Origin: Callorhinchus milii
Lineage: Eukaryota
Direction of reading: 5' to 3'
Assembly (NCBI RefSeq): GCF_018977255.1
Contig: NW_024704771.1
Span: 3,596,001 to 3,660,000, forward strand
DNA length: 64,000 nucleotides
Under the pieces are notes generated by a model, which saw nothing but the letters and a program-made list of their open reading frames with translations, was not told the origin of the DNA and did no database searches. How positions within the stretch are numbered: the first letter of the stretch is position 1; every line of letters starts with the position of its first letter. Position numbers and translations under genes: made by a program. This document shows positions 19,876-53,589 of the stretch, piece after piece.

Positions 19876-20329
19876 ATAGTCTGAATAAACCTTGATGTCT
19901 GTGTATGTACTGGGTCATGGATTTATTCAACCCTTACACTACTTACTGCTAGGTAAACAGAGGTGTGTGGAGTAAGGAACCTTGCATAAGATTTCACCCT
20001 GCCCGGGAATCGAACGCATATCCTCTCGCTTGCCAGGCGAGCGCGCTAATCACCATACTACTGGTCTCCCAAGTGGGCCAATAACTGGGAAATATTTTTT
20101 TTGAATACATATTTTTTTGAAGCGATTACTACCCACGGAAGGCAATCCGCCAATCGTCCAACAACCAACCGGGTTCCTACTTACTGCTGGGTAAACAGAG
20201 GTCTTTGTGTGAGCGCGGCGTAAGGAAAGTTGTCTAAGGTTTCGCCCTGACTGACCTGCCTGGGAATCGAACCCAGGTCTTGCAAGGCGTGTGCTCTAAC
20301 CACTGAGCTACAGGACTCCACTGGTGTTA

Positions 20330-23006: not shown

Positions 23007-23080
23007 TTATGCTTGAAGACAAACCACTTCCTCTCCATTCTGGTCTTCAGCATCATTGTTTCTGTTTTGCCTTTTATTAT
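23007..23080 (-). CDS. Gene B exon 9: cytoplasmic tail YNKRQNRNNDAEDQNGEEVVCLQA*
   Basis: cattacag acceptor, phase 1, TAA at 23009-23007; further donor after 22988. Confidence 0.75.
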
Positions 23081-23779
23081 CTGTAATGACATTAACATGA
23101 GACCCATTAACAGATGGGCCAATTGATACAGGGAACTATTGACATAGGGAACTATTGATATGGCGATCCACTGACATGAGACACCATTGACCCAGTGTTC
23201 CACTGTCTGTCCACAATCCCAATTCAGGGATAGAGACAAAGCAAAGCTCCCTCTACACTGTCCGTCCACACTCCCAGGTCAGGGCTAGAGACAGAGTAAA
23301 GCTTCCTCTACGCTGTCCATCCACAATCCCAGATCAGCCACGAGTTTGAATCAAAAATAACAAATTACATTTACACAGTGCCTTTCATGTTGGGAGGATG
23401 TCCCAAAGTGCTGGACTTTCAAGCATTTGGACCCAAGCTGGGAGTTGGAATCAGGAGGGGATGGAGGGCAGGGAGGGTAGGGGAAGGAGGATGAATCAAG
23501 GCTGGGCCAAGATGAAGGTCTTGATATGAGCCTCGGAGGAAGCAAGGGAGGGAGCAAGGTGAAGGGGCTGTGAGACGGAGCTCCAAAGGGTGGGGACCGA
23601 GAGGCTGAAGACCTGACCACCGATGGTGTGGTGGGAGGTGGGGGATGTGGAGGAGTTCGGAACCTGCTGAGTGGAGGGAGTGGGCAGGTCAATATGGGGC
23701 GAGCAGATCACAGAGGTAGGGAGGGGGAAGTCCATGGAGGGCCTTCAGATTTTGAAATCTATCCTCTGGGGGATGGGGA

Positions 23780-24110
23780 GCCAATGGAGCCGGGCTCTTA
23801 CTCTCCGCGCCTCAAGCCAAGGATCCCATATGCTTTTTTAACTACTTTGTCAACCTGTCCTGCTACCTTCAAAGATTTATGTATATAAACCCCCAGATCT
23901 CCCTGTTCCTGCACCCCCTGTAAAACTGTACCTTTTATCTTACATTGCCTCTTCTCATTCTTCCTCCCAAAATACATCGTGTCACACTTCTCTGTATTAA
24001 ATTCCATCTGCCATGCGGCTGCCCATTTCACCAGCTTGTCTATGTCCTCCTGCAGTCTGCTACTATCCTCCTCACTGTATACTAAGTGTTGTGACATCTG
24101 CAAACTTTAT
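23780..24110 (-). mobile_element. CR1 LINE RT fragment
   Basis: LQEDIDKLVKWAAAWQMEFNTEKC...DLGVYIHKSLK. Confidence 0.9.
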
Positions 24111-24488
24111 TGACGAGTAACGCAGATAATAATCATAATCCTTGCATTTGATACAGCGACTTATCACATCGACACGTCTCAAAGCACTTCACAGAATATA
24201 TTATAAAGCGAATTGAATGTATATTTTATGGGCAAAATGCGGTGGCCAATTGCGCACAGCAGTGTTTCACAAACACTTGTAGATTCAGTGAAAAAATTAT
24301 TCAAAAAAAATAAGTTTGAAGGAATTATTTCCCCTGGAAAAGTGATCTGCCGATTGACTGATAACCGGGTTCCTACTTATTGCTCGGTAAACAGACTATG
24401 GAAACTTGCCCAATATTTTGCTCTGCCTGGGAATCGAACACATTACATTAAACACTACGCTGCAGGACTCCAGATATCTTGTACTTAC

Positions 24489-24590
24489 ACAAGCCAAAGA
24501 AAACTATCAACGTCAGGGCAATTAGGGAAAAGATAATAGCCACTGGGGCAACAATGTTTTGTATGTCTGCCTTCAGACTGCATCCTTTAT
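24489..24590 (-). CDS. Gene B exon 8: extracellular loop + TM5 (DKGCSLKADIQNIVAPVAIIFSLIALTLIVFFGL)
   Basis: ttgcttgcag acceptor, GTAAGT donor, 102 nt, phase 1-1. Confidence 0.88.
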
Positions 24591-25810
24591 CTGCAAGCAA
24601 AGACATTAATAAATAGTCAAAACATTGCAAATAATAATCCTTGCATTTGATATAGTGCCTTATCACAGCAACAATAAATTACAATTACACGGCGCCTTCC
24701 ATGTCAGCGAGGACGTCCCAAGGCTCTGGACAGTCAGGTATTTCAACCCAACCTGGGGTTTGGGACCAGGAGGGCAGGGAGATTGGTGACAGTAGGGTGA
24801 CCGACGGCACAATCAAAGAGGAGTGTCTTTAGACACACTTGAAGGAGGCGAGGGAAAGGGCGAGGCAAAGGGACTATGTGCTGGAGATACAAAGGGTGGG
24901 GGCGGAAAATCGAAAGGCCCGACCGTCAATGGTGGGGCTGGCCGGGCATGGGATGTGTGGAGCAGGCCAGAGCCCATTGAGCGGAGGGAGTGGACAGGTT
25001 GATAAGGAGTTAGCAGGTCACAGAGGTGAGATAGGAGCAAGACTGTGGAGGGCCTTGAAGGTGAGGATAAGGATTTTCAACTCTATCTTTTGGGGGAGCT
25101 GGGCTCTACTGTCCAGGGTCGGAGAACTGGGTAATATGATTCTGTTTTCTTTGACTCTGTGAGTATTGATTCAAATTGATCCTGTCCATAGCCAATAAAC
25201 CTGTTGCACCCATTTGGGATTGTCAGGGTATTAAAATTCTAACACCCGTGTTCTCCCCATAGCTCTGCAAACGTGTCCTCTCCAAATAGGGTGATAGGGT
25301 CACGGAGCCCGGTGTGGGAGAGGACACAACAGATCTGGATGTAGAGGGAAGAATTGGGAAGGCTGACAAGCAGGGAATTAGTGTAGTTGAGCCATATTCG
25401 TGATAAATGCCAATGAGAGTCTCGGCAGCCTGAGGGAAGAGGCAGTGGCAGAGCCGGGCGATGTTGCAGGGATGGGAGAAGGCAGAGGGGGTCATGACGT
25501 CTCAACAACAACAAAATTACATTTTTTTTACGGCGCCTTTCATGTTGGAAGGGCGTCCTCAGGCGCTGGACAATCAGTTTTTCGGACCTGAGCTGGGGGC
25601 TGGGATCAGGGAGGGTGGAGGGCAGAAAAGAAAGTCGGGTGATCAAAATCTCAGTCGAAGAGGAGGCTCTTGAGATGGGTCTTGAAGGAGTCAAAGCGCT
25701 TCACAGAATATACTGTAAAGTGGAATGACTGTGTATTCCACCTCTGCCTCATTACGCATTGGAATCCAGAAATGACACGTTGCAGTAGTGCCATTTTAGC
25801 TGTTACTTAC

Positions 25811-25906
25811 CAGCTGTCTTAAATATCTCAATCAACAGAACCAAGGAAATCGCAATGGTTAAAAGATCACTGAAGGGGACTGCAACATCCTTTAGGACAC
25901 GAAAGA
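25811..25906 (-). CDS. Gene B exon 7: TM4 (IFRVLKDVAVPFSDLLTIAISLVLLIEIFKTA)
   Basis: ttctctctgacag acceptor, GTAAGT donor, 96 nt, phase 1-1. Confidence 0.88.
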
Positions 25907-26243
25907 CTGTCAGAGAGAACAAAGGATAATCATAAACTTTGCATTTGATATTGCGCCTTATTATGTTGTTAATACGTCGCAAAGCGCTTCGCAGAATATA
26001 TAGTAAGTTGATCACTCAATCCATTGAGTGACCAATTTTGTTTCGAGGGATTGTTACCCCTAGTGATTCCCCCAATCAACTAACAACTAGTTTTCTACTT
26101 ACTACTTTTCTACGTACTGCCCTGGTTAACAGAGGCGTGTGGAGTAAGAAAACTCGCCGGGGAAATCAAACCGTGGTCCTCTCACTTGCGAGATCAGCAT
26201 GCTAACCGCCACGTGCTTCATCTGAACTGATCTGATTTAGTGT

Positions 26244-26575
26244 GGAGTCCTGTAGCTCAGTGGTTATAGAGCACTCGCTTTGCAAGTGAGAGGCCTGAGT
26301 TCAATTCCAGGCAGAGGGCGAAACCTTGGGCAAGTTTCCTTACTCCACACAGAGCCTAATAATAATCCCTCCAAAACCAAAAACAATAATAAATTGGTCA
26401 TTTTCAATCTACGACTGTTTGTGGGACAATGCTGTGCGCAATTGGCTGCCGCGTTCGCCCACAAATATACAGTCAATTTACTTTACAGTGTGTTCTGTGA
26501 AGCGCTTTGGGATGTCCTCCCGACGTGAAAAGCGCTATATCAAATGCAAGTATTATTATTATTATTATTATTATC
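26244..26575 (+). mobile_element. Young tRNA-derived SINE
   Basis: Full length, near-consensus. Confidence 0.9.
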
Positions 26576-27113
26576 TACTGACCATTCAGTGCAGTGGTTA
26601 GCACACTCGCCTCGCAAGCGAGGGGACCCGGGTTTGATTCCCAGCAGGCCGAAACCATAGGCAAGTTTCCTTAATCCACACGCCTCCGCTTACCTAGCAG
26701 TAAGTAGGAATGTCTCAAAACTCTTCATGGAATATAAACCGTAAAGTAAACTGACTGTATATTTTGTGGGCGAAAGGCAGCAGCTCACAGCAGCGCGTGG
26801 AATGAGTGACCAAAATTTTACATTTGCTTCCTTCCCTATAATGCCTTGCCCCCTCTTTCTCCTGTTTTGTAATCACACCTGAAGAAGTTCTCCTTCGACC
26901 TTCCCTACGGTCACCTCATTCCCCTTCTCCCCAGATCAACATCGTGCTCCACCATTGTTAAGTGCCCTGAAATGCTCCTGTGTGAAAGGCCTGTATAAAT
27001 GCAAATTGTTGTTGCTGTTTGGATACTCCTAAGCACGGCGATGGGTGTCCGCGCGGGTCAGACATCCGGCTGACCAAAAAAACAATCTTTTTTTAGACAA
27101 TGCCCAGACTTAC

Positions 27114-27239
27114 TGTTATTCTTGCGAATATTGGTGAAATGTTTCATGCAACACTTCGTTATCTCCAAAGTGGATATTGTCACAATAATTATTACGACAA
27201 TTATAATCACCAGAGGAACCAATATTATTGCAGAAGGAC
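27114..27239 (-). CDS. Gene B exon 6: TM3 + basic loop (GPSAIILVPLVIIIVVIIIVTISTLEITKCCMKHFTNIRKNN)
   Basis: tctgctccgcag acceptor, GTAAGT donor, 126 nt, phase 1-1. Confidence 0.9.
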
Positions 27240-27367
27240 CTGCGGAGCAGAACAGAAAGCACTGTCAATGTTCATAGTTCTTTATTTCAAGATCCTCTCA
27301 CTCGTCATCAAATCCCTTCCTATCCTGGCAGCTCCCTACCCTTCCGACCTGCTTACTTCCCAACCTA

Positions 27368-27697
27368 GTGGAGTCCTGTAGCTCAGTGGTTAGAGCACTC
27401 ACTTTGCAAGTGAGAGACCTGAGTTCAATTCCAGGCAGAGGGCCAAACCTCGGGCAAGTTTCCTTACTCCACACAGAGCCTAATAATAATCCCTCCAAAA
27501 CCCAAAACAATAATAAATTGGTCATTTTCAATCTACGACTGTTTGTGGGACATTGCTGTGCGCAATTGGCTGCCGCGTTCGCCACAAATATACAGTCAAT
27601 TCACTTTACAGTGTGTTCTGTGAAGCGCTTTGGGACGTCCTCCCGACGTGAAAAGCGCTATATCAAATGCAAGGATTATTATTATTATTATTATTAC
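27368..27697 (+). mobile_element. Young tRNA-derived SINE
   Basis: Full length, near-consensus. Confidence 0.9.
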
Positions 27698-28555
27698 TGC
27701 CCGCTGCCTCCGCTCGACTGGCTCTGGCCTCCTGCTTTTCCCATGTGCCCTCCGCTCCACCATCGGTGGCCGCAATTTCAGCCACCACACCCCAAAACTC
27801 TGAAACTCTTCCTCAATTCCCCCGCCTTGCCCTTTCCTTCCCCATCTTCAGATCGCAACTGAAGACCTTCCTCTTTAAGCGTGCTTACGGCCAACCCCCC
27901 ACCCCCCCGCCAACTCCTCCACCACCAGTCTCAGCATGGTGCTCTGCCACTGCCAAGTGCCTGGGGATGCCACCCTGTGTGAGGGGTGCTGCGCAAATGC
28001 AAGTTGTTGTTGCTGTTTAACAAATTTTAGGACAGTCAAAAATAGGTTTTATTTTCTATTTTATGAATACATCTTTCAAAAATAAAACGGACACACTCAA
28101 ATGTGGGATCCGGTAGCATAGTGGGTAGCACACTTGCCTCGCAAACAAGAGGACGCAGGTTCAATTCCTGGTCTGGGCAAAACCTCAAGCAAGTTTCCTT
28201 AACTTTACACACACAAGTGCCTCAGTTTACCTGTCGGTAACTAGGGACTCGGTTGCGTAAGTATTAAAGACTTTAATTGCACACTTGGAGAACTGGTTTC
28301 TTACTTCTTACTGGCAAATAAAGACTTAATCTCCACGGCTGTTTGTGGGCCACTGCTGTGCACAGTTGGCTACCACGTTTCACCGTCAAAGTAAACAGTC
28401 ATTTAAATTTCCAGTTGATTCTGTGGAGTACTTTAAGATATCTCAACGATGTGATGAGGCTAACACAAATGCAAGGATTATTATCTCTCTTTTTTTGCAT
28501 GTTTCATCGTATTCTGTAATTAGATTAGGGTTTGGGTCATTATAATGTTACTTAC

Positions 28556-28657
28556 CACTAACTTTCAGTTGGAAAATAAATGCACAGATTAAAGCGATCA
28601 ATGACGAGATGGCCAGAGTATGGTGTGTGAAGAAGATTTTGTTCTGGACTTTGATGT
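28556..28657 (-). CDS. Gene B exon 5: TM2 (DIKVQNKIFFTHHTLAISSLIALICAFIFQLKVS)
   Basis: gctttgctag acceptor, GTAAGT donor, 102 nt, phase 1-1. Confidence 0.88.
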
Positions 28658-28849
28658 CTAGCAAAGCAATTAAGAATTGTTAGGTTCATTTTAATTTCCT
28701 TGAAAATTCATTGTAGAACTGTAAAACAACACTCCAACAACACGACCCAAACCCAAACCCAAACCCGAAACCCTCGTCCACGCCTTCATCACCTCCCAGC
28801 TCGACAACTCCACTGCCCTCCTCACTGGTCTCCGCACTCCTTAGTCCGA

Positions 28850-29280
28850 CCCTATCAGCATTCCATTTTGGGTACCACACCTCAGGAAGGATATACTGGC
28901 CCTGGGGAGGGGGTTTGCAACGCACATTCACCAGAATAATACCAGGGCTTAACGGGTTAAATTGTGAGGACAGATTTTATAGACTTGGTCTGTATTCTCT
29001 TAAATTTAGAAGTTTGAGGGTTGATCTGAGTGAGGTTTTTAAAATGATAAGGAGATTTGCTCGGGTAGCGACAGAGAAACTATTTCCTCTGGTGGGTGGA
29101 GGGAATCCAGAACAAAGGGGCATCGTCTTAAAATGAGAGTGAGGCCATTTAGGAGTGATATCAGGAGACAGTTTTTCACACAAAGGGATAGTGGAAATTT
29201 GGAACTCTCTCCCCCAAAAAGGCTATGGGTTATGGCAGTGCCCATTCACATTTTCAAGACTGATGGGATAAAAGGATATC
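28850..29280 (+). mobile_element. CR1 LINE 3' fragment
   Basis: FW.PHLRKD..., RLGLYSL..R.LRVDL.EVFK, FF.QR motifs. Confidence 0.8.
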
Positions 29281-29668
29281 GGATCGACTTCAAGATCCTC
29301 ACAGTTGTGTTCAAAAGCCTTCACTCTGGCATCTCCCTCCCTCTCCGACCTCCTCACTCCCCAATCCACCACCCATTGGCTCCACTCGATTGGCACTGAC
29401 ATTCCTGTTTGTCCCTTCGCCCCACCATCAGATTCTACGCCCCGAAACTCTGGAACACTCTCCCTCCACCTTGAAAACCTTCCTCTTCAAACATGCTGAT
29501 GGCCAACCCCCCCTTACCCCCAACCTCCCTGCCCTACACCCCTCCTGATCTCAACCCGCAGCTCGGGTGCAGATCTCTGACTGACCAGCGCCTTGGGACA
29601 TCCTTCCGATGTGAAAGGCACCGTGTAAATGTCATTTGTTGTTGTTGTGGTGGTGCTTGTTTACTTAC

Positions 29669-29785
29669 CCAACTGTTCCTTATTTGATTGATTGCAAAGG
29701 AATGCAATTCCAGTAAAGGACATCAATGCACATAGAAATGCGATGGCTGAACCTGCAAGTATGACCTTATGGGAAATTGTCAGAC
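29669..29785 (-). CDS. Gene B exon 4: TM1 (GLTISHKVILAGSAIAFLCALMSFTGIAFLCNQSNKEQL)
   Basis: ctctctgtttaag acceptor, GTAAGT donor, 117 nt, phase 1-1. Confidence 0.88.
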
Positions 29786-31021
29786 CTTAAACAGAGAGTA
29801 ATACACATACAGTCATTTCATTTTGCATTTACATCCTACAATATGATACGTTTGCAATCTAAAATTTTATATTTATACATTGAGTATTTTATTTTAAGTT
29901 AACACTTACATTTTCCTGATCATGTCGTCAATAAAAATCCAAGCACTTCTCAGGATATATATATATAATAATAGGCCTTGCATTTGATTTGTCATGTTCT
30001 TGAGATGTCTGAAAGGTTTGACAGGATATACTGTACAACAACAAATTACATTTGTATAGCATCAATTGGCATCGTTTACGTTGGGAGGATATCCGAAGGT
30101 GCTGAACAATCAGTTTTCAGACCCGAGCTGGGGATCAGAATTAGGGAGGGTGAAGGGCAGGGGGGAAAGAGGGTGATCGAAGGCACGGTCGAAGAGGAGG
30201 GTCTTGAGATGAGCCTTAGCAGAGGTAAGGGAGGGGGCGAGGCGGAGGGACTGTGGGATGAGGTTCTAGAGGGTGAGGATAGAGTGGCTGATGACCCACC
30301 CACCAATGGTGGACCGAGCGAGGTGGGAGGTGTGAAGCAGGCCAGAGCCCGTTCAGCGGAAGAAGCGGGCACGTTCGTAGGGCATTAGCAGGTCGCAGAG
30401 GTAGGGGGGAGCAAGACCATGGAGGGTTTTGTAGGTGAGGACCAGGATCTTTGAACTTGTGATGTGGAGTCGGGTGAGATTGGGAGTGATAGGGTCACAA
30501 CACATACACATACAGACACACACTCACACACCTCACACTCATACATATGGTGGAAGCAGAAAGTGTTGATTCTTTCAAGAACAAATAAATATTATTTCTG
30601 TTAGGAAATAATATCTTGGGGATACAGTATATAGTTTGGGATACAACATGTAATGCGACTGCCAGGATGGTGGAAGGCAAACTGGATGGACCTTGGTCTT
30701 CTTTCGTATAGCAAATTCTTACGTCCATATGTACAGTTTGCCCCTGTTTACTTAGCAGTAAGTAGGAAACCCGGTTGTTAGTCGATTGGTGGATCACTTT
30801 TCCGGGGATAATAATCCCTTCATAATAATACTTCAATCCATGACTGTTTGTGGGACACTGCTGTGTACCTTATTTCGCCCACAAAATATACACATCACTT
30901 TACAGTATGTTCTGAGAAGCGCTTTGAGACGTCTCGAAGATTTGATAAGCACTATATCACATGCAAAGATTATTATTAATACTGGGATACGCCAACACAT
31001 CAGACTGGCAGCAGGACTCAC

Positions 31022-31291
31022 CGTAAATGACGAGATGGTATGAGTGGTTTGTCTGTCCCAGTGAGTTTCCCATGACGCAAGTATAAATCCCACAATCCCA
31101 CTTTTCGGCCTCAGCAATCACCAGCGATCTGTTGTCGTCCATCAGCCGAAGGCGGTCGTCACCAAAAAGCTTCTGCTCTTCTTTCATCCAATAAATATCT
31201 GTCGCTTCTCCCATCAGCACCTTACAGCTCAGCTCAACAGTGGTTCCCACGTAACTCGAGTTAACAACAATGAATGGATTTGACAAAGGAA
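31022..31291 (-). CDS. Gene B exon 3: Ig C2-type domain (HEPACAM/CEACAM-like)
   Basis: VPLSNPFI..VELSC..IYWMKE..DNRSLVI..DCGIYTC..YHLVIY; 270 nt, phase 1-1, GTGAGT donor. Confidence 0.92.
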
Positions 31292-31679
31292 CTGCAGTGG
31301 TGGGTTTGGATAAGGTTGGGTTGGTGAGCAAGAGATGGGAGATTAGGGGAGATAAGAACAGGAACAAATTACTTGTGCGTCAACAACAATAATTTACATT
31401 CGCAAAGCGCCCCTCTCACGGGGCAGCATCTCAGAGTACTTGACAAGGGGGAAGTGACCGTAATCCGGGTCGAAAAGGAAGGTCTTTAGTCGTGATATAA
31501 AAGAAGGGAAGGAGAGGGCAAGGTGGAGGGATTGAGGGAGAGTAGTGGCTGAAATTGCAGCCACCGGTGGTGGAGCAGAAGAGACGAGGGTCAAGCAGGA
31601 GGCCTGAGCCAGTCGAGCGGAAGCAACTGTAGTGGAGTGGGGAGAAAGCAGGTCAGAAGGTAGAGAGAAATGCAAAATC

Positions 31680-32135
31680 CTTGCATTTGATACCACGCCT
31701 TATTACGTCGTCGAGACGTCTCAAAGCGCTTCACGGAATATACTGTAAAGTAGATTGACTCCGTACTTTGTGGGTGAAACCCAGCAGCCAATTGCACACA
31801 GCAGTGTTCTACAAACAGCCATGGAGTGAGTGACCAAATATATTCGGAGTGGGGGGGCATTGTTGGCCAGGAAATCGGGAGAGAGAAAGAGAGGGAGCAA
31901 CTCCCTTGTCTTTTCGAATAGCGCCACAGGAGCTCTTCAACAACCTGAACAGGCAGACGGGAGCTTGGCTTAGCATTTCATCCAAAGGACAGCCCCCTCC
32001 GACAATGCATCACCCCCCCACCCCACCCAGCAGCATTGGAGCGCCAGCTTAGACGCTGAGATTCTAAGTCCTGACATGGGGGCTTGGACCCACAACCTTC
32101 TGACTCAGAGGCCAGAGCGCTACCACTGAGCCAGG
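31680..32135 (-). mobile_element. Older full-length Deu-type (SacSINE1-like) SINE
   Basis: Head TGGCTCAGTGGTAGCGCTCTGGCCTCTGAGTCAGAAGGTTGTGGGT, central Deu-like domain, L2-type tail. Confidence 0.75.
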
Positions 32136-32150
32136 CAGACAAATACTCAC

Positions 32151-32489
32151 CAAAAACTTCCAGGTGTATAATCTTTTCCATGCTGTTTTCCAGATTAACT
32201 TTGATTTGGTACTTCCCACTATCACTGATTTGCAAATGTTTCAGCAGTATCGACCCATTGGACTCGTTAAAGTCAACCCGATTTTTATACAGCTCAGTTT
32301 TGGTGAGGGTCTTACTCTTGATGTAGTAATCTAAAATGGGCAAAGAGATGTCCGCTTTGCTGAAATGCCACTGAATGATGTTTTTATCTATCAGATCCTC
32401 CTCGGTGAAACCCAGCAGCAAAACAGAGGAATTGAACGCATAAACCAGTCTCATCTCTCTCCCCTCGGCCGCTGTGATTAGGGCTCCAT
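32151..32489 (-). CDS. Gene B exon 2: Ig V-type domain without cysteines
   Basis: DGALITAAEG..IIQWHF..YKNRVDF..NGSILLKHLQISDSGKYQIKV..IHLEVF; 339 nt, phase 1-1. Confidence 0.92.
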
Positions 32490-32745
32490 CTGAAAGAAAG
32501 AAATTACATTTGAATAGTTAGTGACTTTCCCATCAGGAGGATGTCCCTAGGTCCTGGACAGTCAAGGATTTGGACTCGAGCTGGGTGTTGGGATTAGGAG
32601 GGGTGGAGGGCAGGGAAGGTGGGGGGAGGAGGATGGCCGAAGGTGTGGTCGAAAAGGAAGAGATGGACCTTGAAGAAGACAAGGGAGCGAACGAGGTGAA
32701 GTGGCTCCGGGATGGAGTTCCAAAGGGTGAGGGCAGACACTACAT

Positions 32746-32853
32746 AAGAACATAAGAAATAGGAGCAGGAGTAGGCCATTCAGCCCCTCGAGTCTGCCCC
32801 GCCATTTAATACGATCATGGCTGATCTTCTAACCTAACTCCATTTACTCGCCC
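32746..32853 (-). mobile_element. CR1 3' terminus (TTCTTATG tail)
   Basis: aagaacataagaaataggagcaggagtaggccattcagcccctcgag on + strand. Confidence 0.85.
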
Positions 32854-33703
32854 TAAACCCAACAATAGATTTCCAGATATTGATCATACTCAGACCTCAT
32901 TTCTGGGTACGAGAATTGATTACAGGTACAACAAAGGTTTCCACTTGGCTGAAGGAAAGTCCCCATTTATCATTTGCCACGATGATTCATCATGGACAGC
33001 GATTGAGACCGTTAGTGAAGCAAAAAGCTGTGGTGCACCGCCAGATCTTGAGAATGGATATTATAAAACAACATCTGTTGTTTTTGGAGGCATAGTTACA
33101 TATTATTGTAATGAAGGATACAGTTTGGTTGGTGAAGATACCCAAACTTGTGTAGCAGGCGGTTGGGATGGCAGAACCCCAGTCTGTGATCCTGCGACGT
33201 GTGATGATCTTTCACCAATTGAAAATGGACAAACTCCACCACCACCTCAAGCTAACTGGGAATATGAAAATGCAGCAACGTTTACATGTAATCCTACATA
33301 TACATTGATTGGTGAAAAAACAATTTATTGCCGGGCGAATGGTACATGGAGTGATATTCCTCCAAAATGCAAAGTTGTTCAATGTGTTCGTCCCGATCCT
33401 CCAATCAAAAATGGAAGAATAATAGCAGGATTTGGACCCACGTACGAGTATCGTCAGACGATTATCTACAAATGCGATGAAGGTTTTGAAATGGTTGGCA
33501 AAGATACCATTGAATGTCGAGAAAATAGTACATTTCCGCCAGCACCTCTATGCATTCCAGAAGCAAGAAGTACTCCTCCTGTGACCGTTCCTGGCGGAGC
33601 TGAGGCGAAAACGAGTCCTCATCCAACAAGTGAAAGCACATCACACATCGACCGATCCGTTATTTATGGTCACAACCTGCTCCTCGTACTATTGCTTCTA
33701 CTG
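32850..33703 (+). pseudogene. Intronless (processed) copy of a CD55/CD46-like regulator of complement activation: 4 CCP domains, S/T/P-rich linker, hydrophobic C-terminus
   Basis: Four contiguous CCP modules with no introns; CCP2-4 keep all 12 Cys; no ATG or signal peptide; interrupted at the 3' end by the SINE at 33705. Confidence 0.85.
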
Positions 33704-33704
33704 C

Positions 33705-34039
33705 GGAGTCCTGTAGCTCAGCGGTTAGAGCACTCGCTTTGCAAGTGAGAGACCTGAGTTCAATTCCAGGCAGAGGGCCAAACCTCGGGCAAGTTTCCTT
33801 ACTCCACACAGAGCCTAATAATAATCCCTCCAAAACCAAAAACAATAATAAATTGGTCATTTTCAATCTGCGACTGTTTGTGGGACATTGCTGTGCGCAA
33901 TTGGCTGCCGCGTTCGCCCTCAAATATACAGTCAATTCACTTTACAGTATATTCTGTGAAGCGCTTTGGGACGTCCTCCCGACGTGAAAAGCGCTATATC
34001 AAATGCAAGGATTATTATTATTATTATTATTATTATTAC
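33705..34039 (+). mobile_element. Young tRNA-derived SINE inserted at the end of the retrocopy CDS
   Basis: Full length, near-consensus, long (TAT)n tail. Confidence 0.92.
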
Positions 34040-35335
34040 TAGAAAGAATACTATGATAGAGCGTCTATCTGAAACATTTTCCAACTCTATTTTAAATTAT
34101 TGCAATGCGAGTATGCACTTTTCACCATTGTGATTGTGTCAGCTCGATTACTGCCCTAATGCGATGTTAAAAACAAATGGCGTTGTTTGAAAAGAGATTG
34201 GGGTGTGTGGCGGTTGACCCTGTGCTCCAGCTAACAAACCTTAAGATAAAGCTGGACATTCACTTGACTGTCTATGGAACAATGATGTGTTCAGATTAGC
34301 TGCTGCATATTCCCCAAAATAGTCACTACACTTTGCCAAAACTTTGTGGAGCACTTTTGAGAGATTTAGTGTTATAAGCGATGTATTCTATTAAATGAAG
34401 GATTATCAACAATGTTCAGGTATCATGTGAATGTTAAAGAAAACCTACTTATTTATTGCAATTCCAACAGCAACTTTATTTTGTCTTTTTGTAATTCCCG
34501 CAACTGAATTTGATCATTTTTAACAACTGGAAAAGTTAGTGAGATTCCACTAAATTCTAACGAGTACTAAATGCACTCCTACGCATCTGAGTAAACCTCT
34601 CGCCGATTTGCAGTTTATAATGTTGTTTAATTTTCAGAATGCCGTGGAACTTGGGCAAGTTTCCTTACTCCACACAGAGCCTAATAATAATCCCTCCAAA
34701 ACAAAAAACAATAATAAATTGGTCATTTTCAATCTACTACTGTTTGTGGGACATTGCTGTGCGCCATCGGCTGCCGCTTTCGCCCACAAATATACAGTCA
34801 ATTCACTTTACAGTGTGTTCTGTGAAGCGCTTTGGGACGTCCTCCCGACGTGAAAAGCGCTATATCAAATGCAAGGATTATTATTATTATTAACAGTCCA
34901 TTTATTGTTTGGCTACAGTTGAGTGCGCTGCACCGAGCAGTGTTATTCTTGACTGATTTCTATTCAATCGTGTAAAAACTATTTTGTCTATTCATATGGG
35001 AATTTGATTCATGTTGAGATCCTATGCAGTGATGTTGCGAGGAGGCGGGGGCGGGGGGGCGGGGGGGGGCTCAGCAGGAGGGAATCTTATTTTTCTTTAT
35101 TGCGTAATTAATTTAATGAGAGTGAAAATCGTTTAATTTTAATGTAACTTCAACCAAAGAGCACATTTATAATGGTTTGTTTTGTGGGAGGTCTGACTAC
35201 AACTCTAGTCTTTCAACCAAAATCATTGCCAGATTGTTAATATTACACAATCATGGACCCTGTACATTTAATATTTCAATAAGGTCTTAACTTTAAATAG
35301 GCTTCCTTAAAAATAAGTATCCACTGAATAAATTA
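34040..35335 (+). other. Probable 3' UTR carried by the retrocopy
   Basis: AT-rich, largely non-repetitive sequence with ATTTA motifs; AATAAA 35327-35332; SINE fragment at ~34645-34890. Confidence 0.45.
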
Positions 35336-35353
35336 CTGGAGTCCTGTCGCTCG

Positions 35354-36460
35354 TGGAGCCCTGTAGCTCAGTGGTTAGACCACTCGCTTTGCAAGTGAGA
35401 GACCTGAGTTCAATTCCAGGCAGAGGGCCAAACCTTGGGCAAGTTTCCTTACTCCACACAGAGCCTAATAATAATCCCTCCAAAACCAAAAACAATAATA
35501 AATTGGTCATTTTCAATCTACGACTGTCTGTGGGACATTGCTGTGCGCCATCGGCTGCCGCGTTCGCCCACAAATATACAGTCAATTCACTTTACAGTGT
35601 GTTCTGTGAAGCGCTTTGGGACGTCCTCCGACGTGAAAAGCGCCATATCAAATGCAAGGATTATTATTATTTTATTATTATTATCACCATATCCCGTAAT
35701 CCCTTTAGTTTTAAAAAATCTATCGATCTCAGTCTTGAATATGTTCAATGACTGAACATTCACAGCCTTCTGGGGTAGAGAATTCCATAACTTCACTACC
35801 CTCTGAGTGAAGAAATTTTTTCTCAACTTAGTTCTAGTTTTGGTCTGCCAATACCTCTCCCCAAAAGCCGCTGAAACCCTGGTCCGTGCCTTTGTCACCT
35901 CTCGGCTGGACTACTCTAACGCCCTCCGCGCCGGTCTCCCATCCACTACCCCATCCATAAAATCCAACTCATTCAAAACTCTGCCGCCCACATTCTCACC
36001 CGCACCAAACTCCGCTCCCCGATCCCCCGAGGCCTTGCCAGACTGCACTGGCTGCCTATCCAAGAGAGGATCGATTTCAAGATCCTCACCCTCGTATTCA
36101 AGTCCCTGCACTCCTCTGCACCCCCCGACCTCTCTGACCTCCTCTCTTCTCAAAACAGCATCCGTTGCCTTCGTTCCTCTCCGTCTGGCCTCCTCTTTGA
36201 CCCCCGAGTCCTCCGCTACACCCTCGGTGGCCGTGCCTTCAGCCACTATGCCCCGAGCCTCTGGAACTGCCTTCCTCACTCCCTTCGTCTCGCTCCCTCC
36301 CTTCCCATTTTCAGGTCTCTGCTTTTCGACCGTGCCTTTGGTCACCTTCTCCCCCTCCCCCTGACTCGGTCCCAGGATACGAAACTGTAAAGCGCTCTGA
36401 GACGCCGGCCGGCCGGTGGAGGGCGGTATATAAATCCAAGTTGTTGCGTTGTTGTTGTAA
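35354..36460 (+). mobile_element. SINE (+) / CR1 fragment (-) / L2 3' fragment (+) cluster
   Basis: SINE 35354-35682; CR1 35687-35848; L2 YLSPKAAETLVRAFVTSRLDYSN...(TTG)n to ~36460. Confidence 0.88.
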
Positions 36461-36469
36461 AAGGCTGAC

Positions 36470-37520
36470 CTTTAATCCTGAGACTATGACTCTTAGTTTT
36501 AGGTTCTCCAACCAGGAGAAACAGTCTCACATTGTCTACTCCGTCAAGACCCTTAAGAATCTTACAGGTTTCCATAAGATCACCTCTAATTCTTCTACAT
36601 TCTAGAGAATATAGGCCCAGTCTATTCAACCTCTCCTCATAAGGTCAACCCCGTCATCCCAGGAACCAACCTTGTGAACCTATGTTACACGGTGAGTATA
36701 TCCTTTCTTAGATCAGTTTTTAGTCCTATCAATTTCTCTACTACTATTTCTTTACTGATATTAATTTCTTTAAGTTCTTCTCTAACGTCAGTCTTTTGGT
36801 TCCCCACTCTTTTTGGTAAGTTTCTAGTATCTTCTAACGTGAAGACAGAAGTAAAATATTTGTTTAATGACTCAACAACAACAAAAACAACAACAACAAC
36901 AACAACAAAATTACATGTGAACAGCGACTTTCACGTCGGGAGGACGTCCCGAGGCGCTGGACAGACAGAGTTACGGACCCCTCTGGGGGTCAGGGTGGGG
37001 GAGGCTGGAGGGCAGGGGGAGAAGCAGGGAGGTCCCAGAGCTAGGGGGGGAGCAAGACCGTGGAGGGCTTTGAAGGTGGGGACCAGGATCTTGAACTGTA
37101 TCCACTGTGTGATGGGAAGCCGGTGGAGTCGGGCGAGGATGGGGGTGATAGGGTCGCAGAGCCTAGTGCGGGAGAGGACATGCGCTGCTGAGTTTTTTTT
37201 TGTGGAGTTTCTTTATTCCCGATTATAATTTCTCCGGTCTCTGTCTGTAAGGGACCCACATTCACTTTTGTTAATCTCTTCCTCTTTATATACTTGTAAA
37301 AGCTCTTACAATCTGTCTTTATATCTCTGGCTATTTTCTCTCATATTCCATTTTCTCCCTCTTAATCAGTTTCTTCGCTGATCTCTAAAGCCCTCCCAAC
37401 CCTCAGGTTTAGAGATCGTTTTGGCAATATTATAAACCTCTTCTTTTAATTTTATACTTTCCTTAACTTCTCCGGTTAGCCATGGTTGAACCATTTTTCC
37501 CGTGGAATTTGAATTTCTCA
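36470..37520 (-). mobile_element. CR1 fragments with a nested L2 3' end (~36870-37200)
   Basis: CR1 peptide NVGPLQTETGEIIIGNKE / ESLNKYFTSVF split by the L2 insertion. Confidence 0.75.
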
Positions 37521-38393
37521 AAGGCTGAAGGCCCGACTGCCTGATGGTGAGGTGGTTAGTTGAGGGAGGGGAACATGAGCCCGTCTAGGAGACAAAATAT
37601 CAGGCGCGATGTGGAATAAATCCCATTTCTGTATGCTTGTGCGCAAGTCGCTATACAAAATAGCACATCTTAGTAATTTATTTGCTCAGCCAGGAGTCTG
37701 ACTCATGCGGAGAACGACCACCGTGCTTAGGAGTCTCCAAACCCAACTGAGAATTCCACACATCCCATCTACACATGGAAATTCCTGAGATACATTCTCT
37801 CTCTCTCTCTCTCTCTCCCTGGAGGGACACATCCTGCTTACCTGATCCTGGAAAGTGTTAGGCGCAGATTGGTAAGAGCCACGGCCTGGGGAGTGTGCGT
37901 TGGAGTAACTGCTGGAGTCTAAACAGCTAAAACCGCATAGTTTGCCATCTGTTAAGAGTTATGAGATATCTCACTGATGGGATCAAACGCAAGCGTTCTC
38001 CACGAACTGAATAGGGATTTAAAATATCCACAAATATATCGATAATAATAATAATCCTTGCATGTCATTGAGATGTCTCAAAGCACTTCACAGAGTATTT
38101 TGTAAAGTGGTTTGACCGTGTATTTTATGGTCAAAACACAGCAGTGTCCCATAAACAGTCGTGGATTGGGTGACCAAATATATATATATATATATTTTGG
38201 AGGGCTTATTACAGTTGGAAAGAGATCTGGCAACTGACTAATAACCAGATTTCTAGGCAAACAGAGCCATGCGGAGTGAAATATCTCATGTAAGGAAACT
38301 TGCCCAACAATTCGCCCTACCCGGGAATGGAACCCAGGTCTCTCGCTTGTGACCAAGTGCGCTAACCATTAAGCTATGGGACTCCGAGCTTAC

Positions 38394-38454
38394 CTTGTGA
38401 AGAGAAGGAAGCACTTGCAAGAATCACAAGGAGAAAAGTCCCAGGGATAGACAT
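38394..38454 (-). CDS. Gene B exon 1: signal peptide MSIPGTFLLVILASASFSSQ
   Basis: ATG 38454, hydrophobic core, CAAG|GTAAGC phase-1 donor, joins in frame to the V exon. Confidence 0.82.
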
Positions 38455-38558
38455 CAGAAAACCCCAATCAGGATGAGCTAATGCAGAGGGAATCTTTGCA
38501 GGTGGTAAGTCAGACTGAGTCCCTGGCAATAACTCAGTTCTTTTTTGCTTGAGTTGTT

Positions 38559-38565
38559 TTTTATA
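38559..38565 (-). promoter_or_regulatory. TATA box of gene B
   Basis: TATAAAA ~105 nt upstream of the ATG, with a GC box immediately upstream. Confidence 0.5.
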
Positions 38566-39902: not shown

Positions 39903-40156
39903 NNNNNNNNNNNNNNNNNNNNNNNNNNNNNNNNNNNNNNNNNNNNNNNNNNNNNNNNNNNNNNNNNNNNNNNNNNNNNNNNNNNNNNNNNNNNNNNNNN
40001 NNNNNNNNNNNNNNNNNNNNNNNNNNNNNNNNNNNNNNNNNNNNNNNNNNNNNNNNNNNNNNNNNNNNNNNNNNNNNNNNNNNNNNNNNNNNNNNNNNNN
40101 NNNNNNNNNNNNNNNNNNNNNNNNNNNNNNNNNNNNNNNNNNNNNNNNNNNNNNNG
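39903..40156. other. Assembly gap
   Basis: N run. Confidence 1.
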
Positions 40157-43625: not shown

Positions 43626-46600
43626 CTGAATGAGAATGGGAGAAGGAGGGATAACATTGAGGGTTGTCAAACCTTGTGCCTGTAGATTCCACCCGCACTG
43701 TTTGCCCTCTGATTCCCTGCACCCATGTGATCATCGTTCATGTAACATCCCGTGCCATGACCCGCTCTGCCTTCCCCCAACACTGCAATATTGCCCGGCT
43801 CACTGCCTCTCCCCTCAGGCCGCTGAGACCCTCATCCATGCACACGTCTCAAGATCCTCCTCTTCGACCGCACCTTTGGCCACCCTCCTACCTCTATCCT
43901 CCCCGCCCTCCACCCCTCCTGATGCCAACCCCCAGCTTGGGTCCCAATCCCTGACTGTCCATCGCCTTGGGACGACCTCCCGACATGACAGGCGCTGTGT
44001 ACATGCTCGTGGAGTCCTGTAGCTCAGTGGTTAGGGCAATCGCCTCAATTCCCAGCAGGTCAGGGCGAAACCTTGGGTAAGTTTCCTTACTCCACACGCC
44101 TGATAATAATCCCTCAAGAAAAAAAACAATTTAGTCACTCATTCCAAGGCTGTTTGTGACGCTGATGTGTGCAAGTGGCTGCCATGTTTCGCCCACAAAT
44201 ATACAGTCAATTCACTTTTCAATGTATTCTGTGAGGAGATTGAGACGTTTAGAAGACATGAATAGCACTACATCAAATACAAGAGTTATTATTATTATTA
44301 TTAAATGTAGTGCGTTGGTATTGTTGTGACAACCTTGGTGCAACAACAACAACTTGCATTTATACAGTGCCCCTCACTCAGGGTTGTGTCCTGAAGAGCT
44401 TGACATTGGTGCAGCGCAACACTGAGCCGAGAGAGGTGACCATAAACATGGTCGAAGAGGAAGGTCTTCAGGCATGACCTGAAGATGGGGATGGAGGGGA
44501 CAAGCTGGAGGGATTGGGGGAGAGTGTGGCAGAGTTTTGGGGGTTAGTGGCTGAAAGGTGGAATTCTGTAGCTCAGTGATTAGAGCACTCGCTTTACAAG
44601 CAAGAGACCTGGGTTCAATTCCCGGCAGGTCAGGGTGAAACCTTGGGTAAGTTTCCTTACTCCGCACACACACGCCTGGTAATAATCCCTCAAGAAAAAA
44701 AACAATAAATTGGTCATTTCAATCCACGACTGTTTGTGGGACGCTGCCGTGCGCAATTGGCCGCCGCGTTTCACCCACAAATAGACAGTCAATTCACTTT
44801 ACAGTCTATTCTGTGAATCGCTCTGTGACGTCTAGAAGATGTGAAAAGTGCTATATCATATGCCAGGATTATTATTTATTATTATTAAAGCGCGGCCACT
44901 AAGGGTGGAACAGAGGGCACAAAACCAGAGCGGAGGCAGCAGGTAGTGAGTTGGTGGGGGGGTGGGGTAAGCCGGTTGGAGAGATAGACGAGTGAGAGGA
45001 TCTTGAAATCGATCTATTCAGTGATAGGGAATCTGTGGAACCTGACGAGGACTCGGGTGATGGGGCTACGGAGTGTAGTGCGAGAGTAAGTTGGCGGCAG
45101 TTTGGGATTAACTGTTAAGTGGACGGTGGAGCTGGGGAGAGGGCATTTGAGTAGTAAGATGGCATCCTGGATTAGATGAAGTGGAAAGAGATGACTCAAA
45201 TAGGTCAAAGTGTGGGCCAAATTCATCCGAACCTCTCTCATAAGGTCTTCTAAGTATTTTGACACCACTGGAAGGAAAGATATTCCTTGAACCACCGAAT
45301 GCTTTAGAAATTAGGTGACTTCCTGTCCCTTAAACTGTGTTGTTTCACAGGACTTTGTGTTAGGGGCATATACTGTAAACAGGAAAGCTATACGTAATGC
45401 TAAACTCTGAGGTTTGTGTATGACACTGGTGGGAGGATATCAGTAAAGATGTACATTATGCTATCAAGTACCCACCTCAGCCCCAACCTCACCGATAATT
45501 AATTTACTCCTTCCAAATGGGTTGAGGGTGAGATTCTGCACAGTGAGTCACTGCTCTGGTTAAAGAGCGTAGGAGAGTGAGTCAACACAAGTCGAGAGAC
45601 CAAACTCAACGCTCAAAAAGTCTCGAAAAACTGAATGTGGGAAGAATAATAATCCTTGCATTTAATGCAGCGCCTTATTACATCGTGGAGACGTCTCAAA
45701 GCGCATCACAGAATATACTGTAAAGTGAATTGTTGGGTACTTTGTGGGCAAAATGCAGCAGCCAATTGCAAACAGCAGCGTCCCACAAACAATGAGCGAA
45801 TGACTGTTCATTCGGGGGATTGTTGGCCGGGACACCGGGAGCGAGAAACTCCCTTCTCTTTTTGAATAGCGCCGCAGGATCTTCAACATTCACCCAAACA
45901 GCCACCGACAGGACCTCGGTTAAACACCTCATCCGAAGGCTTGTGTTTGGAGACGAGAAGCTCAGGGCACCCAAGTCTGTTGAGTTTTTGAAAGGCTAAA
46001 GGTGGGAACTATTGTGAGTGCAGAGTATTAGAGATATCAGGATAGGTAAAGATTGAGGTATATAGGGAACAGAGGGATAAATACGGATTGAGACATATTA
46101 CAATAATCCTTGCATTTGATATAGCGCCTTATCCCGTCATTGAGATATCCCAAAGCACTTCACAGAATGTACTGTGGAGTGCAGTGACTGTGTGTTTTGT
46201 GGGCAAAACCTGGCAGCCAACTGAGCACAGCAGTGTCCCACAATCGTGGATTTTTTTTTACCGCCATAAAGCGATCTACCAATCGCCTAACAACCGTGTT
46301 CCTACTTACTGCCAGGTAAACAGAGGTGTGAGTGTGTGTGTGCGGAGTAAGGAAACTTGCCTAAGGTTTTGCCCTGCCCAGGAATTGAACCCGGGTCTTC
46401 TCACGAGCGAAGTGAGCGGTCTAACTAGTTCACTAAAAGCATGAGTCAAAGCAACCTCGAGCTCAGTCAACCACTCAGATCGCGTTCTCAGACCGGAAAA
46501 ATGGACAATCTTATTTAATCTTTACATTCTATATGTCAGGAGGACATCTGAAAGCACTTTCACAGGAATTACGTTTAAAGTGCAGTGACTGTGTATTTTG

Positions 46601-48393: not shown

Positions 48394-48439
48394 CTGTATT
48401 ACTATTTTAGTACAAATTGATGGTGTCCAATTTTCTTTT

Positions 48440-48890
48440 CTATACACACACACATAAAACACACGCAACACATACGCGCGCGCACGCCCACACCCGCATA
48501 CAACAAGCACACACACAGACACACACACGCACACATACACACAGATACTCATGCGCAACACACGCACCCGCACACAGGTACGCGCACAGCACCCAACACA
48601 GAAAGGGGTGCGCACATTTCAAACGCACACGCGCACCCGGGCACACGCACAAATACACACACAACACACGCCACACGCGCATGCACTTGGACGCATACAC
48701 ACACACACACACACACATACATACACGCACACCCGGACACACACACATACATACATAGACACGCGTGTGTGCATACACACACACACAGATAGAAATATAC
48801 AACACACACCCAAGCACACACATACAGACATACACATACCCACACATACACACACAGATTCACAGATATACACACACGCATATGTGCTGT
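48440..48890. repeat. (CA)n-rich degenerate microsatellite
   Basis: Visible. Confidence 0.9.
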
Positions 48891-53572: not shown

Positions 53573-53589
53573 GACAAAGACACCCACAG

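Follow-up and report, generated by a model that had tools for sequence, protein, structure and literature searches.

The locus described here raises the question of how a receptor with two immunoglobulin (Ig) domains comes to sit on a membrane domain of five helices, and whether its resemblance to CD47 reflects common ancestry. CD47 is a major innate-immune checkpoint, known as the "don't-eat-me" protein, and to our knowledge is the only well-known protein to combine an Ig ectodomain with five membrane helices, poxvirus copies aside; the origin of this design and the purpose of its helix bundle are poorly understood. The window analyzed is a 64,000-nt stretch of DNA from the elephant shark Callorhinchus milii. 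It holds a genuine, transcribed gene whose product is a multipass glycoprotein of the Ig superfamily (IgSF) in type-I orientation. From its sequence and structural models, the protein is considered fairly probably to be a two-Ig glycoprotein on a CD47-style five-helix anchor with a role in recognition or adhesion, its ancestry with CD47 being either shared or parallel.

Gene structure and predicted protein

Nine exons on the minus strand, with AG/GT splice sites and every intron in phase 1, join into 1287 nt encoding 428 aa; the join is free of internal stops, AG acceptors and GT donors flank each internal exon, and the gene contains no runs of N. A TATA-like box (TATAAAAA) read from the sequence at 38558..38565 on the same strand, ~110 nt upstream of the ATG, is a candidate core promoter. 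Exon 1 (38454-38394; 61 nt) carries the ATG and the signal peptide (MSIPGTFLLVILASASFSSQ) and ends in phase 1; its product matches the N-terminus of RefSeq XP_007908103.2 exactly, and the AlphaFold2 pLDDT of <50 over residues 1-29 fits the expectation for a signal peptide. Exon 2 (32489-32151; 339 nt) encodes an IgV domain with N-glycosylation sequons (Pfam V-set, residues 59-132, E 1.3e-12); no Cys occurs in residues 21-133, and the canonical IgV disulfide is therefore absent. Exon 3 (31291-31022; 270 nt) encodes an IgC2/I-set domain (Pfam I-set/Ig_3, residues 143-221, I-set E 5.7e-15) containing the C156-C205 pair and an extra Cys200 in the motif DCGIYTC.

The membrane domain is encoded by five phase 1-1 exons. 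Exon 4 (29785-29669; 117 nt) provides TM helix 1, running out to in, and the start of cytoplasmic loop 1; exon 5 (28657-28556; 102 nt) provides TM helix 2; exon 6 (27239-27114; 126 nt) provides a short extracellular K-x-S-G-P loop and TM helix 3, after which comes a basic, Cys-rich cytoplasmic loop (KCCMKHFTNIRKNN). TM helix 4, with D352, E365 and the invariant S359, is encoded by exon 7 (25906-25811; 96 nt), while exon 8 (24590-24489; 102 nt) encodes an extracellular loop with the invariant Cys374, which is the third full codon of the exon, followed by TM helix 5. Exon 9 (23080-23007; 74 nt including the TAA) encodes a 24-aa cytoplasmic tail (YNKRQNRNNDAEDQNGEEVVCLQA) in which no tyrosine-based signaling motif is found. 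Kyte-Doolittle windows of 19 residues scoring >1.6 form five blocks, one in each of exons 4-8, and the AlphaFold2 model contains five long helices (227-257, 264-296, 300-329, 338-370 and 376-412); the pLDDT is 70.7 for the full protein and 73 for the TM region alone, with a pTM of 0.63. The first-pass annotation of this DNA had proposed the nine-exon, 428-aa series with phase-1 introns, a Cys-less IgV followed by an IgC2 domain, and five hydrophobic segments with one on each exon; all three stand, on the stop-free join and the database entries discussed below, on Pfam and the lack of Cys, and on the hydropathy blocks and modeled helices, respectively. Its argument from charge for an N-out/C-in topology also matches the sequence, as the basic loop after TM3 and the basic start of the tail would both lie inside.

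Transcript support and predicted isoforms

Splice logic alone is not proof of such a gene, because hundreds of chance candidates appear when the window is simply scanned for phase-1 exons that are hydrophobic; this non-specificity of the splice-plus-hydrophobicity criteria would suit an annotation artefact, in which either the five hydrophobic exons are spliced as cassettes or alternatives and the main product crosses the membrane fewer times, or unrelated exons have been chained. The support considered decisive for the gene model comes from sequence entries: the joined product is 100% identical to the Callorhinchus milii entry XP_007908103.2, and a second 428-aa entry, UniProt V9KU54, differs by 2 substitutions and displays the same exon series. 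Entries of the UniProt V9K series derive from elephant-shark cDNA data; as V9KU54 is an independent 428-aa entry carrying the same exon set, the exons are used in series, and the earlier view that the TM exons are joined in this way rather than serving as alternative ends agrees with the presence of all nine in both entries. The gene, earlier called invisible to the ORF track, is not invisible; public annotation already predicts the exact protein, although it is misnamed (VSIG1-like, VEGFR3 isoform X1 and HEPACAM isoforms) and no function is described.

Predicted isoforms drop exactly one TM exon each, namely TM5 in Callorhinchus X3, TM4 in Mobula, and TM3 and TM2 in those from Pristis; such skipping would alter topology, and it is the second observation that favors an artefact. 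Against this, chimaera, shark and sawfish all keep the series of five exons at near-identical sizes, homology of the TM regions extends over ~151 aligned columns, and invariant residues are distributed across exons 4-8; together with the two independent full-length entries, these make an artefact highly improbable.

A family known only from cartilaginous fish

A TM-only profile searched against 1.84 billion representative proteins returned 13 real matches, all chondrichthyan; 12 of these are IgV-IgC2-5TM proteins and the 13th, from the skate Rhinoraja, is a fragment of 166 aa with the TM region only. Matches come from Callorhinchus, Mobula (two species), Pristis, Hemitrygon, Hypanus, Rhinoraja and Heptranchias, thus covering a chimaera, rays, a skate and a cow shark, with none outside the cartilaginous fish; rays have several gene copies and Callorhinchus a single one. 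Searches of Pfam and the literature found no characterized family with the IgV-IgC2-5TM architecture. This gene represents the chimaera in an uncharacterized family, so far seen in cartilaginous fish only, that has expanded in rays; the names under which databases now list the family (VEGFR3, contactin, PTK7 and HEPACAM) are misleading and should be corrected. With it, the shark and ray repertoire of immune or adhesion molecules gains an uncharacterized IgSF group that is expanding.

Membership of the Callorhinchus gene is seen in colinear homology over the Ig and 5-TM regions and in a common exon plan. Its TM region scores 20.0 bits against an HMM built from elasmobranchs only, compared with -5.8 +/- 2.3 for 300 shuffles, and the TM exons measure 117/102/126/96/102 nt in Callorhinchus, 117/105/126/96/99 nt in Heptranchias and 117/102/123/87/99 nt in Pristis, all in phase 1. 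The residues G224, G297, S359 and C374 are invariant in the family; Cys374 is present in 18/18 members and Cys200 in 17/18, the remaining protein, Pristis P0046, having another extra Cys in its C2 domain. Juxtamembrane Cys pairs recur across the family, and the elasmobranch TM4 contains a His. Conservation is lowest in the TM region, with a mean pairwise identity of 35% as compared to 57% for C2; the V domain also varies more than C2.

The ectodomain and the upstream neighbor

By sequence and by model, the ectodomain is of the CEACAM/HEPACAM/CD2 type. CEA and CEACAM1 are among the strongest matches in a PDB sequence search, and Foldseek places CEACAM1 at the top, the best matches also including CAR, JAM-A and CD48/CD58; weak matches to the 2B4 V-domain occur in 13/18 members. 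As in the CEACAM, HEPACAM and CD2-SLAM proteins, an N-terminal IgV domain without an intradomain disulfide is followed by a disulfide-bonded C2/I-set domain; further likenesses are the phase-1 Ig exons, the lineage-specific gene expansion, and a tandem neighbor of the same type. The membrane part differs: the CEACAM, HEPACAM and CD2-SLAM proteins have a single pass or a GPI anchor, often with an ITIM/ITSM tail, whereas the chondrichthyan proteins have five helices and lack tyrosine motifs.

The neighbor lies upstream on the same strand and contains exons for a Cys-less V domain (~49852-49510) and a C2 domain (~48364-48100); it is probably a tandem paralogue, and its annotated IgV-IgC2 product of 305 aa is too short for five helices. 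No convincing TM exon was found for this gene, and the hydrophobic ORFs downstream of it look repeat-derived. A single-pass, HEPACAM/CEACAM-like gene resembling this neighbor is the proposed starting point for an independent origin of the family, in which four TM exons were gained in the chondrichthyan stem by insertion or duplication into phase-1 introns and the likeness to CD47 is convergent; such an origin is a serious possibility, if somewhat short of probable. The type of ectodomain, the adjacent gene with its similar IgV and IgC2 exons and short product, and the detection of the family in Chondrichthyes only all favor it, as does the exon phase, since it is exons of the symmetric phase-1 class that an IgSF gene can take up with its frame intact. 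Duplication of a TM exon is not demonstrable, because the five share no significant similarity (best hhalign probability 25%, others <=6%), and this mutual dissimilarity counts against an independent origin, as does the neighbor's want of a convincing TM exon.

Comparison of the membrane domain with CD47

The first-pass annotation had noted no clear sequence identity to the TM segments of CD47, and profile comparisons agree. The CD47 TM family PF04549, which genuine CD47s carry, has no match in any of the 18 members (hmmscan, E up to 10), and hhalign of the family TM region with that of mammalian CD47 gave a probability of 0.4% with a CD47 profile that was mammal-only, and CD47 did as well when column-shuffled or reversed; the real score falls within the column-shuffled distribution, being reached by 36/150 global and 14/150 local shuffles. 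Foldseek of the TM model against the PDB gave nothing at E <= 0.001, and the CD47 structures 7myz and 7wn8 are not among the best 50 matches, the query being a model with a pLDDT of 73 and helical bundles being poorly told apart by this program. Nothing was significant against BFVD, where poxvirus CD47-like proteins rank 11, 12 and 14 (E ~0.7-0.9). The V-set_CD47 family PF08204 has no match in the Callorhinchus protein; sub-threshold matches occur in 5/18 members, the best with E 0.007.

The gene plan, by contrast, agrees with that of CD47. Both proteins have an Ig ectodomain, a five-helix membrane domain and a short tail in N-out/C-in orientation, and in both genes a signal exon ending in phase 1 and the Ig exon(s) precede five consecutive single-helix phase 1-1 exons; in macaque CD47 the TM exons measure 90/108/93/93/93 nt, all in phase 1 with one helix each. 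The TM5 exon opens in both with a conserved Cys in the extracellular TM4-5 loop, which in macaque CD47 is Cys263, the first full codon of the exon; a long-range disulfide reportedly links Cys33 and Cys263 of CD47 (Rebres et al. 2001, J Biol Chem), tying the loop to the Ig domain. An extra unpaired Cys is also present in the membrane-proximal Ig domain of both. The differences are the two Ig domains rather than one, the CEACAM/2B4-like V domain without the canonical disulfide, the TM region without a PF04549, hhalign or significant Foldseek match, the restriction to cartilaginous fish with multiple copies in rays, and the splicing, as CD47 varies its tail while the predicted isoforms of the family skip TM exons instead.

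Between the two alternatives named by the first-pass annotation, a deep relative of CD47 or an independent Ig-5TM family, the sequence and fold tests were negative for CD47, and the exon organization and position of the loop Cys closely parallel it. As a deep relative, the family would have taken its 5-TM module, and perhaps the whole gene, from the ancestor of CD47, with the two-Ig form being ancestral or the C2 exon gained later; this is a tentative possibility, well short of probable. The shared plan, with TM exons of 96-126 vs 90-108 nt and a short tail exon taking phase 1 to 0 in both genes, is the main argument for it, alongside the loop Cys and the extra Ig Cys. Decay of the similarity is part of the proposal, and loss of detectable CD47 similarity is expected because the TM region of the family itself is just 16% identical between chimaera and elasmobranchs; the weak V-set_CD47 and poxvirus matches point the same way. 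Descent from the CD47 ancestor is opposed by the PF04549 and hhalign results and the placing of 7myz and 7wn8, by a V domain nearer to 2B4, CD2 and CEACAM than to CD47, and by the consideration that exons all in phase 1 are the necessary outcome whenever an exon is inserted into an IgSF gene. The lack of a sequence or fold link to CD47 favors an independent origin, against which the identical helix count and the correspondence of the loop Cys to Cys263 are hard to ascribe to chance.

A broader proposal, which is doubtful, is that gnathostomes had an ancient 'Ig-5TM' superfamily, of which this family survives as a sister lineage; as all of its TM exons are symmetric phase-1 cassettes, a single helix could be skipped under regulation and the tail's topology flipped. 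If true, the Ig and five-helix design of CD47 would not be a one-off, the same five-exon membrane module, including the Ig-to-loop disulfide, would carry a CEACAM/HEPACAM-like two-domain ectodomain, and a splice-controlled topology switch not known in CD47 would be added. A second, independent-looking family with the gene plan of CD47 provides a natural comparison; the five single-helix phase-1 exons, loop Cys, unpaired Ig Cys and short tail common to both are candidate needs of the design.

Proposed function

The protein is best read, from its sequence and by analogy, as acting in recognition or adhesion at the cell surface, with an ectodomain of CEACAM/HEPACAM type on a CD47-style anchor. 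The V domain would mediate homophilic or heterophilic recognition between cells, as in CEACAM, SLAM and HEPACAM, and a putative Cys200-Cys374 disulfide would staple the C2 domain to the helix bundle much as the CD47 IgV domain is stapled to its own. In place of a signaling tail, the bundle may offer other membrane proteins a platform for lateral docking, and its cytoplasmic Cys cluster may be palmitoylated.

The first-pass suggestion of a role in self-recognition or channel association can be carried as far as an auxiliary but obligatory channel or transporter subunit, which would interact through its helix bundle and use its Ig part only for targeting of the complex. Precedents for auxiliary subunits are HEPACAM/GlialCAM for ClC-2/MLC1 and basigin/embigin for the MCTs. 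The polar and charged helix residues (invariant S359, D352 and E365 in the chimaera, the TM4 His in elasmobranchs), a tail lacking a signaling motif, and the appearance of HEPACAM among the RefSeq best-hit names of predicted isoforms are all in keeping with such a subunit; the ray-specific expansion and the greater variability of V than C2 look more immune or recognition-related than housekeeping, and the TM region evolves fast. A subunit of this kind is considered unlikely. For the recognition or adhesion molecule preferred here, low conservation of the TM region is as compatible with an anchor under loose constraint as with a specific docking platform.

Gene Structure and Domain Organization

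The Ig-5TM gene, at about 3.6 Mb on scaffold MU249860.1, lies on the minus strand and consists of nine exons, which join into 1287 nt and encode a stop-free product of 428 aa. Exon 1 (38454-38394, 61 nt) begins with ATG and is followed by exon 2 (32489-32151, 339 nt) and exon 3 (31291-31022, 270 nt); exons 4 (29785-29669, 117 nt), 5 (28657-28556, 102 nt), 6 (27239-27114, 126 nt), 7 (25906-25811, 96 nt), and 8 (24590-24489, 102 nt) each hold one of five hydrophobic blocks (Kyte-Doolittle windows > 1.6), and exon 9 (23080-23007, 74 nt) closes with TAA. Every acceptor is an AG after a pyrimidine-rich tract, every donor reads GT(A/G)AG, the introns are phase 1 throughout, and no N runs fall within the gene. 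Residue for residue, the joined product matches C. milii RefSeq XP_007908103.2; UniProt V9KU54, also 428 aa, shows the identical exon series with two conservative substitutions. V9K-series UniProt entries stem from cDNAs sequenced in the elephant-shark genome project, and these substitutions show that V9KU54 was not copied from a model of this assembly. The exons are therefore used in series. The first-pass annotation had proposed this nine-exon, all-phase-1, stop-free frame, which is borne out by the border checks and the RefSeq identity; it had named alternative terminal use of the TM exons as a possible objection, which falls away as both database entries carry the whole series.

Splice logic alone was rejected as proof of the TM exons, as hundreds of candidates meet the same simple criteria: a scan of the window for hydrophobic phase-1 AG...GT exons returned 219 exons on one strand and 274 on the other, a large share lying within SINE copies. 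Due to this lack of specificity weight is placed on database identity and cross-species conservation, and the decisive support for the gene is external. Thirteen matches to a tRNA model exceed the Rfam threshold, and all represent the heads of one tRNA-derived SINE scattered through introns in both orientations (547-617, 4584-4646, 9540-9603, 13874-13944, 20252-20316, 26250-26314, 26588-26644, 27376-27438, 33711-33773, 35361-35423, 44566-44628, 50346-50408, and 51091-51151); the A/T-rich (ATT)n tail of this element reads as poly-Ile/Leu and yields false TM exon candidates.

Pfam places a V-set domain at residues 59-132 and an I-set/Ig_3 domain at 143-221, and residues 21-133 are cysteine-free. 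Given an alignment of the family, AlphaFold2 predicts a pair of Ig domains and five long helices at 227-257, 264-296, 300-329, 338-370, and 376-412 (mean pLDDT 70.7); together with the hydropathy profile, these results agree with the earlier description of a Cys-less V domain, a C2 domain, and five hydrophobic segments. The ectodomain is of the CEACAM/HEPACAM/CD2 type. Sequence matches in the PDB are Ig-domain proteins: titin ranks first (E 2.6e-19) and CEA second (E 2.9e-18), and CEACAM1 is represented by several chains lower in the list; the best Foldseek matches of the model are CEACAM1, CAR, JAM-A, CD48, and CD58, and a 2B4 V-domain model gives weak matches in 13/18 relatives.

Some predicted isoforms are each short of a single TM exon, which is TM5 for the chimaera (P0005, isoform X3), TM4 for Mobula (P0003), and TM3 and TM2 for Pristis (P0020 and P0023, respectively). 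At least one predicted isoform drops one symmetric TM exon in all three taxa with isoforms examined; as all TM exons are symmetric, the predicted skipping keeps the frame, and if such forms are made the topology of all downstream parts would invert. Two further chimaera isoforms, P0007 and P0009, are without the signal peptide.

Distribution and Conservation of the Family

No Pfam family corresponds to the TM region; hits to DUF2298, EphA2_TM, and designed helical bundles from Pfam, PDB sequence, and Foldseek searches were dismissed as noise. A TM-only HMMER profile built from the chimaera and two manta sequences gave 14 matches among 1.84 billion representative proteins; 13 are left after removal of one false positive, the TM domain of a snail Cys-loop receptor (P0028, E 5e-4), and all are from cartilaginous fish. 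The real matches are IgV-IgC2-5TM proteins and one skate fragment, and represent the chimaera Callorhinchus, Mobula birostris, M. hypostoma, Pristis pectinata, Hemitrygon akajei, Hypanus sabinus, Rhinoraja longicauda (a 166 aa TM-only fragment), and the cow shark Heptranchias perlo. Members are labeled "uncharacterized" or bear misleading automatic names (VEGFR2/3-like, contactin-5/6-like, PTK7-like, HEPACAM-like). A word-indexed search with the 18-sequence profile found further ray paralogues, with matches from rays and chimaera only and none from bony vertebrates.

The TM region of the chimaera shares 16% identity with those of elasmobranchs; it nonetheless scores 20.0 bits against an elasmobranch-only HMM, compared to -5.8 +/- 2.3 for 300 shuffles (maximum 2.3), in a colinear alignment of about 151 columns, and is truly homologous. 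The TM exon plan is kept in three lineages, with sizes of 117/102/126/96/102 nt in Callorhinchus, 117/105/126/96/99 nt in Heptranchias, and 117/102/123/87/99 nt in Pristis, all phase 1. Invariant residues of the 18-sequence alignment include G224 at the Ig/TM1 junction, G297 in the TM2-3 loop, S359 in TM4, and C374 in the TM4-5 loop; C200, which lies in the DCGxYTC motif of C2, is found in 17/18 members.

The sawfish Pristis pectinata has at least seven family loci on one 19.9-Mb scaffold (XP_0518994xx-996xx), and its locus L005 lies on CM019888.1 at 9.44-9.49 Mb. The V domain is duplicated in some members (P0046), and the ray proteins P0179 and P0184 (600-740 aa) likewise match the family profile. 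These observations point to active duplication of domains and genes in batoids.

Comparison with CD47

The first-pass annotation saw no clear sequence identity to the CD47 TM helices yet raised a deep link to CD47 as one of two options; the former observation stands, and the profile and Foldseek comparisons of the latter gave nothing significant. The human CD47 sequence used agreed with PDB 7WN8 at 322/323 residues, and mammalian CD47s were then gathered. With a cutoff as lax as E 10, PF04549 still matches no family member. When hhalign compares the TM profile of the family with a mammal-only CD47 TM profile, the probability is 0.4% and the score no better than that of column-shuffled or reversed CD47. 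Foldseek of a TM-only AlphaFold2 model (pLDDT 73, pTM 0.63) returned nothing significant from the PDB, with CD47 outside the top 50, and nothing significant from a viral structure library; three poxvirus CD47-like proteins in the latter, at ranks 11, 12, and 14 (E about 0.7-0.9), may be at most a hint. As the CD47-defining sequence features tested are absent, the Ig-5TM protein does not count as a demonstrated CD47 family member.

The gene structures are strikingly alike. On its locus, macaque CD47 has a 46 nt signal exon with a phase-1 end, a 354 nt IgV exon (phase 1-1), five TM exons of 90, 108, 93, 93, and 93 nt with one helix each, all phase 1-1, and a 32 nt tail exon which moves the phase to 0. 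Both genes thus have five single-helix phase 1-1 exons and a Cys early in the TM5 exon: Cys263 is the first full codon of this exon in CD47 and, as reported by Rebres et al. (2001), is joined to Cys33 in the IgV domain by a long-range disulfide. In the shark family the third full codon encodes the invariant Cys374, which, like Cys263, sits in the extracellular TM4-5 loop. Within the membrane-proximal Ig domain, an extra Cys200 lies in the membrane-facing E-F turn. Unlike CD47, the family has a different, two-domain ectodomain.

Shared ancestry of the five-helix module with CD47 would account for these likenesses; set against the negative sequence and fold tests it is considered a real possibility, though short of an even chance. 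The undetected similarity is itself weak evidence against common descent, as identity of the TM region falls to 16% within Chondrichthyes. An exon inserted into an IgSF gene is necessarily phase 1-1, and the all-phase-1 pattern is therefore open to convergence; an independent origin of the module is rated only slightly higher, likewise short of an even chance. The five TM exons show nothing significant against each other by hhalign, and an origin by exon duplication is therefore not demonstrable. No informative neighbor genes are present in the window or within 10 kb on either side of loci L001, L002, and L005.

The protein sequence is already predicted in public databases and is not itself new. 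Neither Pfam nor full-text searches yielded an account of this family or of its architecture, and literature searches on CD47 in cartilaginous fish, CEACAMs in Callorhinchus, and an Ig-5TM family in cartilaginous fish found nothing relevant. The protein is best filed as a CD47-style combination of Ig and five helices whose ectodomain is different and has two domains, so far restricted to cartilaginous fish; the family is a natural comparator for the purpose of CD47's unusual membrane domain.

Proposed Function

The sequence includes a signal peptide. Sequons for N-glycosylation are concentrated in the Ig part, and the positive-inside pattern fits the N-out/C-in topology first suggested from charge distribution, with the basic loop 3 (KCCMKHFTNIRKNNIFRVLK) and the tail start NKRQNR inside. 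The tail has no tyrosine motif. TM3 is followed by a juxtamembrane cluster of Cys residues, seen repeatedly among family members in the forms CC, CxC, or CxxC. It is hypothesized that the V domain, devoid of Cys, serves in trans or cis recognition, by analogy to CEACAM, SLAM, and HEPACAM, and that a Cys200-Cys374 link holds C2 to the helix bundle; the bundle, probably S-acylated, would act as a lateral association platform rather than a signaling tail. The membrane bundle of CD47 has been proposed to associate laterally with integrins. Conservation among paralogues by domain (C2 57%, V 42%, TM 35%) and the copy-number expansion in rays suit a family engaged in recognition more than they suit a housekeeping subunit; a channel-auxiliary role similar to that of GlialCAM is a less likely alternative.

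Neighboring Features

An uninterrupted 267 aa ORF (32945-33748, plus strand) lies in intron 1 of the Ig-5TM gene on the opposite strand and is absent from the called genes of the locus. Pfam recognizes three Sushi/CCP modules in it (E 1.1e-31), after which comes a Ser/Thr/Pro-rich stretch, and the product strongly resembles complement receptor 1/2, MCP (CD46), factor H, and DAF. At the 3' end the ORF enters a tRNA-derived SINE (33711-33773). The ORF may be either a processed fragment or an RCA-type exon block missing from the annotation.

Upstream of the Ig-5TM gene on the minus strand, a probable tandem paralogue has a Cys-less IgV exon at about 49852-49510 and an IgC2 exon at about 48364-48100, and is annotated as a 305 aa product. 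Downstream of these exons nothing convincing as a TM exon was seen, only repeat-like hydrophobic ORFs; the 3' end of this gene may be mis-modeled. Long CA/TG-type low-complexity tracts at about 48400-48900, 53000-57100, and 60400-61350 give rise to long spurious ORFs rich in His/Thr or Cys/Val, and some adjoin assembly gaps; N runs in the window are at 39903-40155, 56465-56627, and 61456-62154.
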